Shown: positions 6,319-21,862 of the stretch, piece by piece
Layout: every line of letters begins with the position of its first letter
Numbering within the stretch: position 1 is the first letter of the stretch
Notes under the pieces: model-generated
Seen by the model: only the letters and a program-made list of their open reading frames with translations
Databases searched by the model: none
Told to the model about the DNA's origin: nothing
NCBI GenBank assembly: GCA_964035545.1
Contig: CAXIUT010000248.1
Coordinates: 1-22,375 of the forward strand
Reading direction: 5' to 3'
Length of the DNA: 22,375 nucleotides
Source of the DNA: Bugula neritina
Lineage: Eukaryota; Animalia; Bryozoa
Translations under genes and position numbers: made by a program

Positions 6319-7473
6319 TCAGTCATAGGTATGCTTAGATGTTTTTGGGGCAACAGTAACTGCTAAAAAGGATTCAGCTATATAGTAGGTCCAGAAAACG
6401 TGAAGAAGTTGCAAGCAAGCCATCATAAAGACCATATATCTATAACAAGGAACAAGGATTTAGAACTAAAACTCTGACAATGTATCCTTCATTCCTTCAA
6501 TGAAAATACAATAAAAGCTGGGTATGATGCATGTCATTGCAAATAATACTAGTCTGCAGCCTACCCAACTGATAAAAGTATGAACAGCTAGTACATACAA
6601 AACATATTTCGAAGAATGTTTATAGTCCTGAATAAATGCATTGATACCTTATAGGCACGAGCTGATATTAAGCCAAAATCGCTATAATCATGAAGAATAA
6701 GTACTAAAATACCAACTAACCATTGGTTAGTAAGATAACTAAACATTATCAAAAAGATTGATAGTCCATGATGCAAAGCATATTAGAAAAAGTTACCTTC
6801 AGATCTGATGAAGACATGACCAAAGAAACGGCTAAAGTGTTTTCCAAATTGAGCGATGTAGTAGACTTTCATCTCTAAAGTAATTTGCATAACTTTTGGG
6901 ACAGTTTAAGTCATAGAATAAGGAGTTCCTAAACCTCCTAACCAAGTAGGCATAAAAGTTGTTTATTTGATAATTCTATACCCCCAAATCGATATAAAGA
7001 GGTAATAGACGATGGAATATGACCATTTGACTAAAGTATAGCACCTTTTTTTTCGTGATTATGGCTCTAAGTATTTTTGTTAAGTAATATAGTGCTTTTC
7101 ATACACATCATCCAGATAATAATGGAAAAGCCATTCAGCGACCTAACTAATATCAGTTTTACAAAGAATATTAGAGCATAAGGAAGACCATATAGAAGCA
7201 TTTCTGGAATATTTCCTTCTCGAATCGAATCAAAGTAAGGATGGGTCTGGAAGATATAAACTTTATGGAATATGTAAGCTGATCCTATGAAGATAAGAGC
7301 TAAAATTGCTCTAAAAAGGTATTCATATTTCTACATAGATGAACAATTAATTTAAAAACAGAGATCCCTTAAAGGATCTACTGAGTAATTTATGGTACTT
7401 TTTTAGAAGAGGTGGTAGGCTCTTCTTTGACAGGAGGAGTTAATTGTTCAGTTTAAGCATTAACTGTGGACAT
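6319..7473 (-). CDS. LAG1: Ceramide synthase (LAG1/LAC1, TLC domain), paralog 1
   Basis: Lag1 motif FFEYALHHGLSIFLIMFSY...GILVLILHDYSDFGL and multiple TM segments; introns 7331-7398 (68 nt), 7143-7162, 6628-6647; ends HTYD-TGA. Confidence 0.92.
7362..7379 (-). promoter_or_regulatory. Conserved intronic hairpin in intron 1 of ceramide synthase paralog 1
   Basis: Sense strand AGATCC-TTTAAG-GGATCT; same stem at the same intron position in all four paralogs. Regulatory function is inferred. Confidence 0.7.
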
Positions 7474-16047: not shown

Positions 16048-17078
16048 TCAGACATATGAATGTTTGGAAGTCGAAATGGCATGGAATTCAGGAGACATAG
16101 CTTTAAAGTCAGTATTTTCAGCAAAGTTGTTCTTCGAGTTGCTGAAACTTCCTTGATTCCTAGTTTCCAGCTTCACCTTAGCAGGACAGAGAGGATTGTC
16201 TTTATTGATAAAATCATTTTTATAGATTGTTTCTAAATAACTCTAAATGTACGATATTGGCGACCAAAGTCAGGATTGTCTTCTTTCTTTTCTATGATCT
16301 TTACCTTTTTAGCCATATATTCTGGATTAGGATTACCAAAGAAGTTTCCATAGCTTGTATTTCCTAACCAATCATAGCCAGTCTTCAATTGATCTGGATA
16401 GTATTTGTAGTCATCCTTTTTAGGATCTTTTGTAATGAATTCTTTCGCATAAGTTGATTTGCTTCTTAGAGGGAAATATCCTCTGGCATGTTTGTCTGTA
16501 GGCTTAACATATTGATTGTCTCCTTTGTATCCTGGAAATTGATGACTATAAGAACTCAATTTCGGACAAGGTCCACTACTATGAAGAAGATCATCAGGGT
16601 GAGGTCTTTCAACATCATCTCCTTTAACTCCTTTAAATCCCTAGCCATAGGTTGAACCCATATCAAGATGAGGTCCTTTGAGCTTGCTGTACTCTTGATC
16701 ATGATTGACTAAATTAGGTATAGCCTTTTGTTGATAGAAGCTCTTTTGATAGACAGTGTTCTTGGTGAGGTCAGGCTTAATGACATGGAATTTGCATAGA
16801 TGGCGCCCACAAGTGCAATCTTAGCAGACACAACTTTCTTGGTTGTGATGAGAGAAATTACTTTTAGACAGCTTTGTAGCTGTTTTATTAAATATATCTC
16901 CTTTCATAAGGCATTATGAGTGGTCATGCTTGCTTCTTTGTGTTTGCACCATTCTGCTATCTACGGATGAATTTAGAGAGTCAAAGTTGAGTTGTCCTCC
17001 TGGGCGTGACTTCATTTTTGTCTGGAACTCAGGTTTTTTGTTTGAATTGGAGCGCTAGCGTTGGGAATTGGGTCTCAT
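16048..17078 (-). CDS. SAXO/FAM154-like (STOP/Mn-repeat) microtubule-stabilising protein
   Basis: CVCEDCTCGRHLC matches the SAXO N-terminal CxCExCxCGRHxC motif; repeated [ST]xYxxxF motifs (NTVYQKSF, STYGEGF, SSYSHQF, STYAKEF, TSYGNFF, TIYKNDF); 20-nt intron 16233-16252. Confidence 0.88.
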
Positions 17079-17202: not shown

Positions 17203-18356
17203 TCAATCATAAGAATGCCTAGCAGCCTTTGGTGAGATCTTAACTGAAATAAACGATTCTGCAATATAATATGTCCAGAAAATGTGCAAAAATTCCAAGC
17301 AAATCATCATAATTATCATGAAACCATAACAAATAAAAAGAGTGTTATACTCTAACTCAGTTAGCTTGTTTTGCCAATCAGATAGAAAGAGACTATGGAA
17401 ACTAGGAATGATACAGACAGCGATAAAGAGAAAGATTCTACATCCACACCAAGCAGTAAATGCGTGTACATAAATTATATCAAGTAATGTCTTTGAATAA
17501 TATTTGTAGTCCTGAATAGACAAACAGATACCTTATATGCCCGAGCCATGATCAAAGCAAAATCACTATAATCATGAAGAAATAGAACCAAAATACCCAA
17601 TAACCATTGATTAGTAAGATAACTAAATACAATCAAGAAAATTGATAACCCATGATGTAAGGCATATTCGAAAAAATTACCTTCAGATCTGATGAAGACA
17701 TGGCCAAAGAAACGACTAAAATGTTTTCCAAATTGAGCAATGTAGTAGACTTTCATTTCAAAAGTTGCATCTACGACTCTTGGAGAAGTTGAAGCCAAAA
17801 TATATGGAGATCCTTTACCTCCTAACCAAGTAGGCATAAAAGTTGTTTCAATTAGTATTGTGTATGCCCAAATTGATATAAAGAGGTAGTAGACGATGGA
17901 ATATGACCATTTGACTAAAGTGTAGCACCTTTTTTTTCGTGATTATGGATCTAAGTATTTTTGTTAAGTAATATAGTGTTTTTCATACACATCATCCAGA
18001 TAATAATGTAAAAGCCATTCTGCAATCTACCTAATATCAATTTTACGAAAAATACTAAAGCATAAGGAAGACCATATATAAGCATTTCTGGAATATTTCC
18101 TTCTCTAACAGAATCAAAGTGAGGATGTGTTTGAAAGATATAGACCTTATGAAAGAGAAAAGCAGCTCCTATGAGAATTATGACAAGAAATATTCTAAAA
18201 AGGTATTCGTATTTCTAGATAAAATGCAATGAATTCAAAAGGTTAGATCCTTGAAGGGATCTATTGTGTATTAAATGATACCTTTTTGGAAGAAGTAGTT
18301 GCTTCTTCTTTAGATAAGTTAGCTTTCTGTTCAATTTTGACACTTTAATTGGACAT
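17203..18356 (-). CDS. LAG1: Ceramide synthase (LAG1/TLC), paralog 2
   Basis: FFEYALHH...LHDYSDFAL; introns 18215-18281 (67 nt), 18027-18046, 17512-17531; ends HSYD-TGA. Confidence 0.92.
18244..18263 (-). promoter_or_regulatory. Conserved intronic hairpin in intron 1 of paralog 2
   Basis: Sense strand TAGATCC-CTTCAA-GGATCTA, 7-bp stem. Confidence 0.7.
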
Positions 18357-18429: not shown

Positions 18430-19583
18430 TCAATCATATGATTATTTTACCTTATTTGAAATACTTTCAGAGACAAAAGCCTGAATAATATAGTAGAGCC
18501 AAAATCCATTCATCAATTACAAACAACACATCATAAATGTCATAAAAACATAGCTGAAATATAACGTTTCATATTCAAACTCTGTTAATTTCAATTCCTA
18601 TCTTGATGAAGTAATAGTAAAAAAACTTGGAATTATACAAACTATGGTAAATAGAACAAGTCTACATCCAATCCATCCAACTAATGCATGAATACCACAA
18701 AAGATAAAAATTATTGGATTGCTATTCTTATAATCCTAAATAAATCGTGTTATACTTTATACCCTCTAGCTGCAATCAAGGCAAAGTCACTGTAGTCGTG
18801 GACTAAACACACGAAGATGCCAATCACCCACTGGTTAGTAAGATAGCTGAACAATATCAAGAAGATAGTTATTCCGTGATGTAAAGCGAATTCAAAGTAG
18901 CCGCCTTCAGGTTTGATAAAAGTATGAACAAAGAATCGACTGAAGTGCTTGCCGAACTGAATGATATAAAAAACTTTCATTTAGAATGTTACTCCTGTGA
19001 CTTTGGGGAGATTTTCAGCGATTGTGTAAGCTGAACCTTTCCCTCCGAGCCAAGTTGGCATGAAGACCGTTTACTTGAGGATCAAATAGGCCCAGATAGA
19101 GTTGCTTAGGTAGTAGATCGAAGAATATCCCCACTTCACTAAAGTATAGCTCCTTTTTTTCCTTGCTTCTGGCTATGAATGCTTTTTTTTATGATTAAGA
19201 TAGTATTTATCGCAGAGATCATCAAACCAATAGTGAAATAGCCAGTCCATAATCTAAATATCTTAAGCCTTACTGAGTAAATGACCGCAAAAGGAAGACC
19301 AAATAAAAGAATCTCGTAAATATTTCCTTCCCGAACTTCTTCGAAATGAGGATGAGTCTGAAAAGTGTATACTTTTTGACCAAGGTAAGCCGCAACAAAA
19401 ATTACAAAGACCAGTCCTAATTTGAAAGAAAACTCCCATCTCTAAATAGAAAATATAAAATTCAAAAAGCAAGATCCTTGAAAGGATCTACTAAGTCCTA
19501 GATGATACCTTTCTGGTCAAAGAATTTTCTGGTTTCTCGACAGGAGTTCCTGCTTCTTCTGATTTTGTATTTTATTTCGACAT
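18430..19583 (-). CDS. LAG1: Ceramide synthase (LAG1/TLC), paralog 3
   Basis: YFEFALHH...VHDYSDFAL; introns 19442-19508 (67 nt), 19254-19273, 18736-18755; ends SYD-TGA. Confidence 0.92.
19472..19489 (-). promoter_or_regulatory. Conserved intronic hairpin in intron 1 of paralog 3
   Basis: Sense strand AGATCCT-TTCA-AGGATCT. Confidence 0.7.
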
Positions 19584-19712
19584 TTTGGCGTGTATTGAAT
19601 TTCAATTATAGATTAAAAATTTAAAGGTTCTCGAGGTGATATTAAAATCTATGATTAAATATGAATAAAATATAAGTATAATTGAATACTAAACATAATT
19701 CAGACCAAAAAG

Positions 19713-20505
19713 TCAACTATTATAAACTTAGTGGAGAGCATCTTGATATTTTTTGATGATTATATCATATTGCTCATTAAAAGAAGAATCTTTCAAATCT
19801 TTTCGATAAAATTAAACGATAAACTGAAAGATTTGAATAGAGTCTGAACAGCAAAGTCCAAGTTTATCTTTGATAGTTTCCTTACTAAATAAAAAACTAA
19901 CTACGTTACTATTTATCCCTTTTCAAAGTCTTCTTCTAGAAAAGATTCGAATTCTGTTTATGAAAGATTTCTCTGAATCTTCAATCGATCAATTTTATCT
20001 AATTTTATTAAGTTTTACCTTGAAGAATGTACTATACTGCCTCAAGAACTTTCAGCTTATTAATTTTTCGACTAACTATCATTTATCTTTATGGTCTAAT
20101 ACCCATCAAACTTTTTTGATACTCTTCTTTAAATTGATGCTTTTGCTAAATTACATCTCCATCGTCTTTATAAATTACTTCAGTTGCTTGCTTTACCTAT
20201 TCTTCATCAAAGTCTTTATAAACTTTACTATTGATAGATTATAGCTCAAGTTTAATAGCTGGGTCTGCTAGAACTAGTTGCTAGTTTTATTGAGGAGTTA
20301 AACCTCTACTGATAAATTTAGAAGCAACTAGATCAGCAATTTTAATAAGAAGAGGATAGAATTATTATCTAAATGAAATGAGAAGATTCAAAGTTTCATT
20401 CTTTGATGGTACCTTTTTATGACTGTTATTAAGCTTCCAGAATGTCCAACCTCCAAGAGCTAGTAAAGCCAAAGCACCAGCACTCACTGTCTTTACTAAA
20501 TTCAT
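19713..20505 (-). CDS. Hypothetical protein with N-terminal signal anchor
   Basis: MNLVKTVSAGALALLALGGWTFWKL followed by a helical soluble part; 20-nt introns 19999-20018 and 19885-19904 give an open frame to TGA at 19713-19715. Confidence 0.85.
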
Positions 20506-20708
20506 GATATAAATATAAACAAAATTAATCAAAACTACATTTTAAAATCTTTAGAACAATAGGTTGATCAAATAAATATGGGGAAGTAAAATAAATAAGA
20601 ATCTACCCTATTTTAAAAGGTTTTTTCTCAATTAACACCTTTTAATCGGATTCATTCATTAATATTTTAATCAATAGCTCTTATAATTTGAAATATTGTT
20701 TTTAAACA

Positions 20709-21862
20709 TCAATCATATGAGTGTTTAACTTTCTTTGTAATAGCTTATGATATCAAAGTTTCACAAAGGAAGTAAAGCCAAAAGCAATTCAATATCTCCA
20801 AGCAACACATCATAAAAGTCATAAAAGCATAGCTAAAATATAAAGTATCATATTCAATTTATGTAAGCTTTAACTCTTACATAGATAGAATAATGAGATC
20901 AAAACTTGGAATAATACAAACAATTGTGAATAGAATAAGTCTGCCCCCGATTCAACCAAAAAGTGCATGAATCCCACAAAAGATAAGAAAATATTGCTTT
21001 GAATTTTTGTAGTCCTAAATAAATTTTATTTTTACCCTATACCCTCTAGCTGTAATCAAGGCAAAGTCACTGTAGTCGTGGACTAAACACACGAAGATGC
21101 CAATCACCCACTGGTTAGTAAGATAGCTGAACAATATCAAGAAGATAGTTATTCCGTGATGTAAAGCGAATTCAAAGTAGCCGCCTTCAGGTTTGATAAA
21201 AGTATGAACAAAGAATCGACTGAAGTGCTTGCCGAACTGAATGATATAAAAAACTTTCATTTAGAATGTTACTCCTGTGACTTTGGGGAGATTTTCAGCG
21301 ATTGTGTAAGCTGAACCTTTCCCTCCGAGCCAAGTTGGCATGAAGACCGTTTACTTGAGGATCAAATAGGCCCAGATAGAGTTGCTTAGATAGTAGATCG
21401 AAGAATATCCCCACTTCACTAAAGTATAGCTCCTTTTTTTCCTTGCTTCTGGCTATGAATGCTTTTTTTTATGATTGAGATAGTATTTATCGCAGAGATC
21501 ATCAAACCAATAGTGAAATAGCCAGTCCATAATCTAAATATCTTAAGCCTTACTGAGTAAATGACCGCAAAAGGAAGACCAAATAAAAGAATCTCGTAAA
21601 TATTTCCTTCCCGAACTTCTTCAAAATGAGGATGAGTCTGAAAAGTGTATACTTTTTGACCAAGGTAAGCCGCAACAAAAATTACAAAGACCAGTCCTCT
21701 TTTGAAATACCTTTACCATCTCTAAATAAAGAAAAAATCAAAAAAAAAAGAGATCCTTGAAAGGATCTACTAAGTCCTAGATGATACCTTTCTGGCTTTA
21801 GAAGTTTCTGGCTTCTCGACAGGAGTTCCTGCTTCTTCTGATTTTGTGTTTTATTTCGACAT
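20709..21862 (-). CDS. LAG1: Ceramide synthase (LAG1/TLC), paralog 4, with an in-frame TGA at a conserved Trp (possible pseudogene)
   Basis: Same exon structure (introns 21722-21787, 21534-21553, 21015-21035); TGA at 20952-20954 in HALFG*IGGRL; downstream frame intact to HSYD-TGA. Confidence 0.85.
21751..21768 (-). promoter_or_regulatory. Conserved intronic hairpin in intron 1 of paralog 4
   Basis: Sense strand AGATCCT-TTCA-AGGATCT followed by a T tract. Confidence 0.7.

Follow-up and report, generated by a model that had tools for sequence, protein, structure and literature searches.

Two kinds of intronic RNA structure described in budding yeast come closest to the element analyzed here. 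In the one, a stem within the intron reportedly occludes AGs and splicing goes to a more distal AG; the structure is said to lie between the branch point and the 3' splice site, shortening that distance, and in APE2 it is said to melt with temperature. In the other, pairing internal to long yeast introns reportedly shortens the distance from the 5' splice site to the branch. Structure-guided 3' splice-site selection in budding yeast is the subject of Meyer et al. 2011 (Mol Cell 43:1033, doi 10.1016/j.molcel.2011.07.030), as cited in PMC9198270. Amongst the ciliates, peritrich intron lengths are narrowly held (PMC13685798), while in Paramecium bursaria introns off the optimum are spliced less efficiently and a frameshift results from 94% of alternative 3' splice-site events (PMC12862383). 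Term searches of three papers on ciliate introns (PMC13685798, PMC12862383, PMC9505925) returned no mention of an intronic hairpin of this kind.

The window, a stretch of 22,375 nt of DNA from an assembly of the bryozoan Bugula neritina (GCA_964035545.1, contig CAXIUT010000248.1), carries on its minus strand four ceramide synthase paralogs (g1–g4), and the first intron of each is long and contains a short hairpin. Like the budding yeast stems that occlude AGs, the stem in the window covers a well-placed TAG; unlike them, it probably lies upstream of the branch, has a predicted stability too high for melting, and persists in lineages where no AG is there to be hidden. The likeness to yeast donor-branch pairing is that the structure sits between the donor and the presumed branch, is independent of sequence, and occurs in an intron that is long for its genome, whereas the yeast pairing is long-range in introns of hundreds of nt and the structure here is a local hairpin of 15–22 nt in an intron of 58–70 nt, with a position that varies by only a few nt and an association with a single gene family. 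The setting is that of short-intron ciliates generally, for which PMC12862383 and PMC13685798 describe narrow intron length, less efficient splicing of off-size introns, and alternative 3' sites that are mostly frameshifting. A speculative resemblance to the histone mRNA 3' stem-loop (RF00032) had been raised in the initial annotation and extends to a stem of 6–7 bp and a 4-nt U-rich loop in g3 and g4; unlike the histone element, the hairpin is intronic, its stem and loop vary freely between lineages and are not conserved in sequence, and it has no match in Rfam, and the resemblance was not sustained.

All four gene models have a coding sequence of 1047 nt (348 aa) that is interrupted by three introns and closes in frame, beginning with an ATG (at 7473 in g1, 18356 in g2, 19583 in g3, and 21862 in g4; minus strand) and an exon 1 of 25 codons. 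The genes occupy, again on the minus strand, 6319..7473 (g1; exons 7473-7399, 7330-7163, 7142-6648, and 6627-6319), 17203..18356 (g2; exons 18356-18282, 18214-18047, 18026-17532, and 17511-17203), 18430..19583 (g3; exons 19583-19509, 19441-19274, 19253-18756, and 18735-18430), and 20709..21862 (g4; exons 21862-21788, 21721-21554, 21533-21036, and 21014-20709). PF03798 (TRAM_LAG1_CLN8) matched all four genes at 45.3 to 59.2 bits (curated cut-off, 24.6), including a match of 45.3 bits at 6579-7025 in g1. The Lag1 motif of ceramide synthases consists of HH plus a downstream HD.SD...K, and the translations of g1–g4 contain YALHHG and LHDYSDF..ARAYK; on both counts, the domain and the motif, the genes are predicted to be TLC / Lag1-type ceramide synthases. 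In-frame TAA and TAG codons in the four genes align mostly with Glu of the other paralogs (30 Glu vs 1 Gln), a pattern consistent with the peritrich code. Contigs of >23 Mb in the 216 Mb assembly also carry TLC genes, so the assembly is read as a host assembly that includes ciliate contigs.

Several features of the surrounding sequence bear on the structure of the contig and the individual genes. Approximately 18 TTGGGG telomere repeats lie mid-contig at 9603-9712, so that the contig seems to join a ~9.6 kb macronuclear chromosome (with g1) to another piece, and in a contig from one DNA run CCCCAA repeats stand directly before position 20264, which suggests that in that sample a telomere was added, or the chromosome has an alternative end, between g3 and g4. 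An in-frame TGA in g4 (20952-20954, minus) falls where g3 has Trp (VGWIGCR), and the frame of g4 is conserved for 80 further codons, up to the common ...SYD TGA end, suggesting either context-dependent decoding of UGA as Trp or a nonsense mutation that arose very recently. Between the start codon and intron 3, g3 and g4 (18755-21862) are near-identical, with sharp divergence in the last exon, a pattern that suggests partial gene conversion. Downstream of g2, a long open frame on the minus strand (16200-17050) is rich in short repeated motifs (…GYKGDNQYVKP…, …KSTYAKEF…) and could encode a candidate SAXO/STOP-like microtubule protein.

The initial annotation had placed a first intron of 66–68 nt in each ceramide synthase gene amongst introns of 20–21 nt, and coordinates and lengths held in all four cases. 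The long first introns span, on the minus strand, 7398-7331 in g1 (68 nt, with GT...AG ends and a frame restored by removal), 18281-18215 in g2 (67 nt; hairpin 18245-18262), 19508-19442 in g3 (67 nt; hairpin 19472-19489, with a 7-bp stem and the loop UUCA), and 21787-21722 in g4 (66 nt; hairpin 21751-21768), and the in-frame joining of exon 1 after removal (K|KYEY, K|RWE) was confirmed in the four gene models. Introns 2 and 3 of g1–g4 are 20 nt with a single exception of 21 nt, which bears out the earlier length range for eight ceramide synthase introns, two per gene (minus strand; 7143..7162, the 20-nt intron 2, and 6628-6647 in g1; 18027-18046 and 17512-17531 in g2; 19254-19273 and 18736-18755 in g3; 21534-21553 and 21015-21035 in g4). 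An ORF-joining scan of the window for further introns was noisy, since only UGA ends ORFs, and a hairpin-bearing intron candidate at 16401-16469 (+) was rejected as antisense to a coding exon.

The common layout that had been reported for the long introns was present in 4/4, with 19 nt beginning GTAYCAT followed by AGATCC, a 6-nt loop, GGATCT, and a U-rich tail of 29–31 nt that ends in TAG, so that AGATCC-N6-GGATCT occupies intron bases 20-37 in each. In g1, the hairpin (7362..7379, minus) reads AGAUCC / UUUAAG / GGAUCU, the proximal TAG ends at 7378, and the stem can be extended by a U-G pair plus CAG/CUG; the 31-nt tail (7331..7361, minus) consists of a U-tract with AAAUU and then a 3' end like that of a tiny intron (UCUAUGUAG). 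As previously calculated, splicing at the proximal TAG (bases 19-21) would retain 47, 46, 46, and 45 nt and shift the frame in paralogs 1–3. The minimum-energy fold contains the hairpin in 4/4 long introns, and the g1 hairpin is more stable than its shuffles (p = 0.0095). Within the window, AGATCC-N6-GGATCT has four matches against 0.03 expected, and in the whole 216 Mb assembly only the same four intron matches occur (reversed-pattern control, 3); the assembly-wide count of four is near chance level, and the signal is that all four fall in these introns. The claim that the arms are invariant between divergent paralogs while loop and flanks vary was also upheld, with arms identical at 12/12 positions between g1/g2 and g3/g4 and loops and flanks that differ. 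Between these pairs, protein identity is 50–54% and identity at four-fold sites is 36–40%, close to saturation, with 30–50% of free intron positions differing and homologous tiny introns differing at approximately half of theirs. The proteins of g3 and g4 are 88% identical and the 5' halves of the genes are near-identical.

Orthologs were sought with a profile of exon 2 (the 56 aa right after the intron), which returned five metagenome loci and 44 ORF fragments; a scan of genome contigs with the profile found no relatives. The DNA of twelve fragments, from metagenome and Logan contigs, gave eleven lineages with an intron at the same site. All eleven have a long first intron (58–70 nt) beside an intron 2 of 20–22 nt, and a short version of the first intron was found in none of them. 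A perfect stem of 5–8 bp with a loop of 3–9 nt is present in 11/11, at a distance of 12–20 nt from the donor and 27–34 nt (mode, 30) from the acceptor, such that fourteen introns (the eleven lineages plus the window paralogs) share a perfect stem at the same place. Loss of the stem from orthologs that keep the long intron, which the initial annotation had named as evidence against its proposal, was not seen, the stem being kept in every such ortholog. The 5' arms read AGACCC(U) in L013, CUUCCU in L019, GUGAUUC in L020, GGUUC in L022, UUUCGA in L026, ACAGAAUU in L027, GAUCCC in L028, CAUCCA in L031, GGAUCCU in L033, and UUCCUUU in L037, while L017 represents a second locus of the L013 type and differs in the loop only. 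The window, L028, and L033 have a GAUCC...GGAUC core in common, which L013 shares apart from one compensatory change; the organisms range from 29 to 49% GC, and the core may be ancestral or may hint at a factor that reads the sequence.

In the protein tree, genes with the intron are found on either side of the deepest split (support 94/98), which argues that the intron and its stem are old. An AT-rich (25% GC) ciliate lineage (L034, 1501-2541, and L035) has a ceramide synthase ortholog without introns 1 and 2 and is nested amongst intron-bearing genes (support 80/84), which looks like intron loss. In one further locus, intron 2 ends in CTG (L016:3169-3190) and that of the near-identical relatives L013 and L017 ends in CAG; the CTG may be a sequencing error or a splice-site variant.

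Across the lineages, it is the pairing that persists. There are 12 distinct 5' arms among 13 stems, and arms pair with their own partner at 100% and with the arms of other lineages at 44–53%; in seven lineages, the stem sequences are unrelated. The stems of L019, L027, and L033 include a G-U pair, which on the opposite strand is a C-A mismatch. Because most of the stem sequences are unrelated and the G-U pairs hold on the sense strand only, the hairpin is very probably a selected RNA structure of that strand, neither a DNA site nor a product of shared descent. As judged by sequence comparison, pairing has been kept through sequence change in independent lineages, the generic mark of conserved structured cis-regulatory RNA. 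Hairpin energies compared to dinucleotide shuffles gave a combined Fisher p of 2.6e-8. For the broad covariation count, the stem register was set by hand in the script, as MAFFT and the covariance model put divergent stems out of register. The formal covariation tool was run on the close clade, where it counted a compensatory U-A to C-G change, and 94% of cells in this clade are paired vs 16–57% with the partner column shifted. The covariance model of the close clade (R1) is highly sequence-specific and gave weak scores for L020, L033, and L019 only.

Known classes of intronic RNA and of unusual introns did not account for the element. A search of Rfam returned no match at the gathering score and, on the intron, only chance-level hits; a snoRNA or miRNA hosted in the intron was set aside with no match to a known family there. 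U12-type introns have an RTATCCTT donor and a TTCCTTRAC branch site 10–15 nt from the acceptor. The GTAYCAT of the window merely resembles such a donor, orthologs start GTAAGC, GTAACC, GTAGAA, or GTATGA, and a CCUUU tract lies at least 20 nt from the acceptor, and a U12-type intron was rejected; minor snRNAs are reported as absent from Stentor and P. bursaria (PMC9505925, PMC12862383). Neither IRE1-type nor tRNA-type splicing fits, and recursive or stepwise intron removal was discarded, an internal GT being absent from most of these introns. In g2, L019, and L028, the U-tract that follows the stem can be drawn as a helix with the A-rich end of exon 1, but both sides are of low complexity and the exon side is fixed by Lys codons.

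The evidence on splicing comes from transcript contigs of relatives. The six runs that contain this stretch are all DNA, with contigs of the four aligned runs crossing the introns without splice joints, and RNA-labelled runs under the same species label contained none of the words sampled from this stretch. Two Logan contigs of relatives (L036 and L018) represent spliced transcripts, in a type of assembly that drops rare isoforms. The contig L036 is 100% identical to genomic L037 over 975 nt except for gaps of exactly 65, 20, and 21 nt, of which the 65-nt gap corresponds to the hairpin intron, while L018 (81% identity to genomic L015) has the 64-nt intron and both 20-nt introns removed and joins K|KYEY. 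For the species of L036 and L037, RNA as well as DNA runs exist (ERR1988827, SRR27422812, SRR5421608). The whole 65 nt is lacking from L036 and K|KYEY is joined in L018, and therefore in these relatives the hairpin segment is intronic and the distal acceptor is the productive site, as had been proposed from the window. No proximal-site or intron-retaining transcript was seen among the relatives' contigs, which omit minor isoforms.

In anatomy, the long introns share both ends with the 20-nt introns. The start (GUA, often GUAUC) resembles the 5' ends of 20-nt introns, the last ~10 nt (e.g., UUUAUCUAG, CUUAUUCAG) resemble their 3' ends, and both kinds have a YUNAU motif 6–10 nt from the acceptor. 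The long intron thus reads as a tiny intron plus an insert of ~45 nt (spacer, stem, and a U-tract often followed by RAAUU). Branch-like sequence lies ~7 nt from the acceptor, and the branch site is probably near the acceptor, which would place the stem upstream of the branch. The explanation favored here, with a probability of about 0.5, is that a selected stem-loop acts in cis as a constitutive insulator or spacer and not as a demonstrated switch. The setting would be a clade of tiny-intron ciliates in whose peritrich-type code UAA and UAG stand for Glu, and the intron would be composed of four modules: a 5' splice-site module (GUA...) with its spacer, 12–20 nt in all; the hairpin of 5–8 bp; ~20 nt of U-rich sequence, often U4-6 then RAAUU; and a ~10-nt 3' end like the 3' half of a 20-nt intron (YUNAU, a few bases, YAG). 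The hairpin would fold co-transcriptionally, compacting or insulating the middle or 5' third of the intron, and folding would take splice-site-like sequence out of play, which here is a complete 21-nt pseudo-intron whose TAG sits where the stem begins; as the next step, the donor would be brought together with the branch/acceptor module that follows the stem by ~30 nt.

That the hairpin is a cis-acting element in the splicing of its oversized intron, the functional part of this explanation, seems slightly better than an even bet. It is favored by a stem position fixed relative to the splice sites in eleven lineages and by the less efficient splicing of off-length introns in the short-intron ciliate P. 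bursaria, as described in PMC12862383. However, an intron with the hairpin left out of the path would still measure ~45–50 nt, vs an effective length of 20 nt, and deletion of the insert would be simpler if the stem only aided its own intron; in L034, introns 1 and 2 have been lost. The persistence of the insert without a short version possibly reflects a further gene-specific function, or a fitness valley between ~20 and ~60 nt. By analogy with the length optimum and the frameshifting alternative 3' splice sites of P. bursaria, regulated unproductive splicing of ceramide synthase transcripts is plausible.

The initial annotation had offered a different role for the stem: when folded, it would hide the default acceptor (bases 20-21) and the distal one would be used, while melting or an opening protein would lead to a frameshifted dead-end mRNA, tuning ceramide synthesis. 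In this genome, the premises are in place, as intron bases 1-21 form a canonical tiny intron of normal length (GUA...UAG), the proximal AG forms the first two stem pairs, the stems of g1 and g3 can be extended over a second upstream AG, and use of the proximal AG shifts the frame in 3/4 paralogs; an AG lies within the hairpin in 7/11 lineages, and frameshifting alternative 3' splice sites are common in P. bursaria (PMC12862383). However, L020, L022, L028, and L031 keep the hairpin without an AG in or near the stem, and outside this genome the proximal AG, where there is one, falls within bases 16-29 (in either arm or in the loop) and not at normal intron length. AG counts, observed vs expected from composition, are 3/3.7 upstream of the stem, 15/11.8 inside, and 3/5.8 in the tail, differences that are not significant, and the relatives' contigs showed no proximal-site transcript. 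Of the hidden-acceptor claim, then, the part that stands is that the stem covers a TAG at normal intron length in this genome, while four lineages without an AG and AG counts as expected make it doubtful that hiding an AG is the core conserved role of the hairpin. Such a switch is unlikely as a whole, and control by temperature, the trigger that had been suggested, is unlikely as well: in silico, at least 92% of the window stems' structure is predicted to persist up to 65 C, with no melting in the physiological range, and an RNA thermosensor was rejected. More weight, if still that of a minority view, can be given to a gene-specific regulatory platform, in which the stem, the U-tract, and RAAUU would bind a trans-acting factor controlling intron retention, nuclear retention, or transcript fate. 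In this assembly, the element occurs only in ceramide synthase genes and all four paralogs (4/4) carry it; the insert has persisted over a very long period in genomes whose other introns are all minimal, the arms show no change between paralogs near four-fold saturation, the U-rich motif after the stem is conserved, and organisms from 29 to 49% GC share the GAUCC...GGAUC core (the window, L028, and L033, and L013 but for the one compensatory change). Stems and loops unrelated in seven lineages weigh against it, since co-evolution of a sequence-specific reader would have been needed in every case, as does the loss of the intron in one lineage. Its extension to a clade-wide riboregulator, the one long intron that tiny-intron peritrich-type ciliates could not do with in shortened form, whose stem and U-rich motif would let the cell adjust the rate of productive splicing in concert for all ceramide synthase paralogs (e.g., as sphingolipid feedback), is a tentative idea and rather improbable, together with the related notion of a second splicing grammar for long introns built on a central stem and a ~30-nt 3' arm.

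The remaining explanations do without a selected hairpin in the intron RNA and fare worse. A DNA-level palindrome, either a site for a dimeric transcription factor or a cruciform in the first intron, is suggested by the perfect inverted repeat, and the window alone cannot tell strand or molecule type; between lineages, however, the half-site sequence varies and complementarity is always kept, in DNA or on the opposite strand the G-U pairs of L019, L027, and L033 would turn into C-A mismatches, and the position of the element is fixed relative to the splice sites, which together leave this reading very improbable. The initial annotation had itself listed an alternative of two tiny introns around a microexon, to which retention of the hairpin segment in the mRNA is related; the first 21 nt do end in TAG and GA-initiated segments of 18–22 nt could close the frame in paralogs 2–4, but the orthologous 65-nt intron is missing from L036 in full, K|KYEY is joined without a break in L018, and an internal GT is absent from most of these introns, so that the microexon is excluded in the relatives and scarcely credible overall. 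Equally negligible is the prospect that the arms have no function and are identical through recent copying or gene conversion, as could be argued from g3 and g4 (88% identical in protein, with near-identical 5' halves), given that g1/g2 and g3/g4 are only 36–40% identical at four-fold sites and differ at 30–50% of free intron positions, that eleven other lineages keep the stem at the same place, and that the combined shuffle test gave p = 2.6e-8.

Extra intron sequence with covarying pairs that has survived deep divergence in genomes of ~20-nt introns is very likely functional, and Rfam holds no family that matches the hairpin. The long first intron is a compact natural substrate on which to study the handling of 65 nt by a spliceosome that is adapted to introns of 20 nt, and it is a natural test of the choice between a perfectly sized proximal acceptor and a distal acceptor. 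Present in every paralog and across eleven lineages, the element singles out one family of enzymes, which stands at the entry to sphingolipid synthesis; if it is regulatory, it would represent a new post-transcriptional control point for ceramide synthesis.
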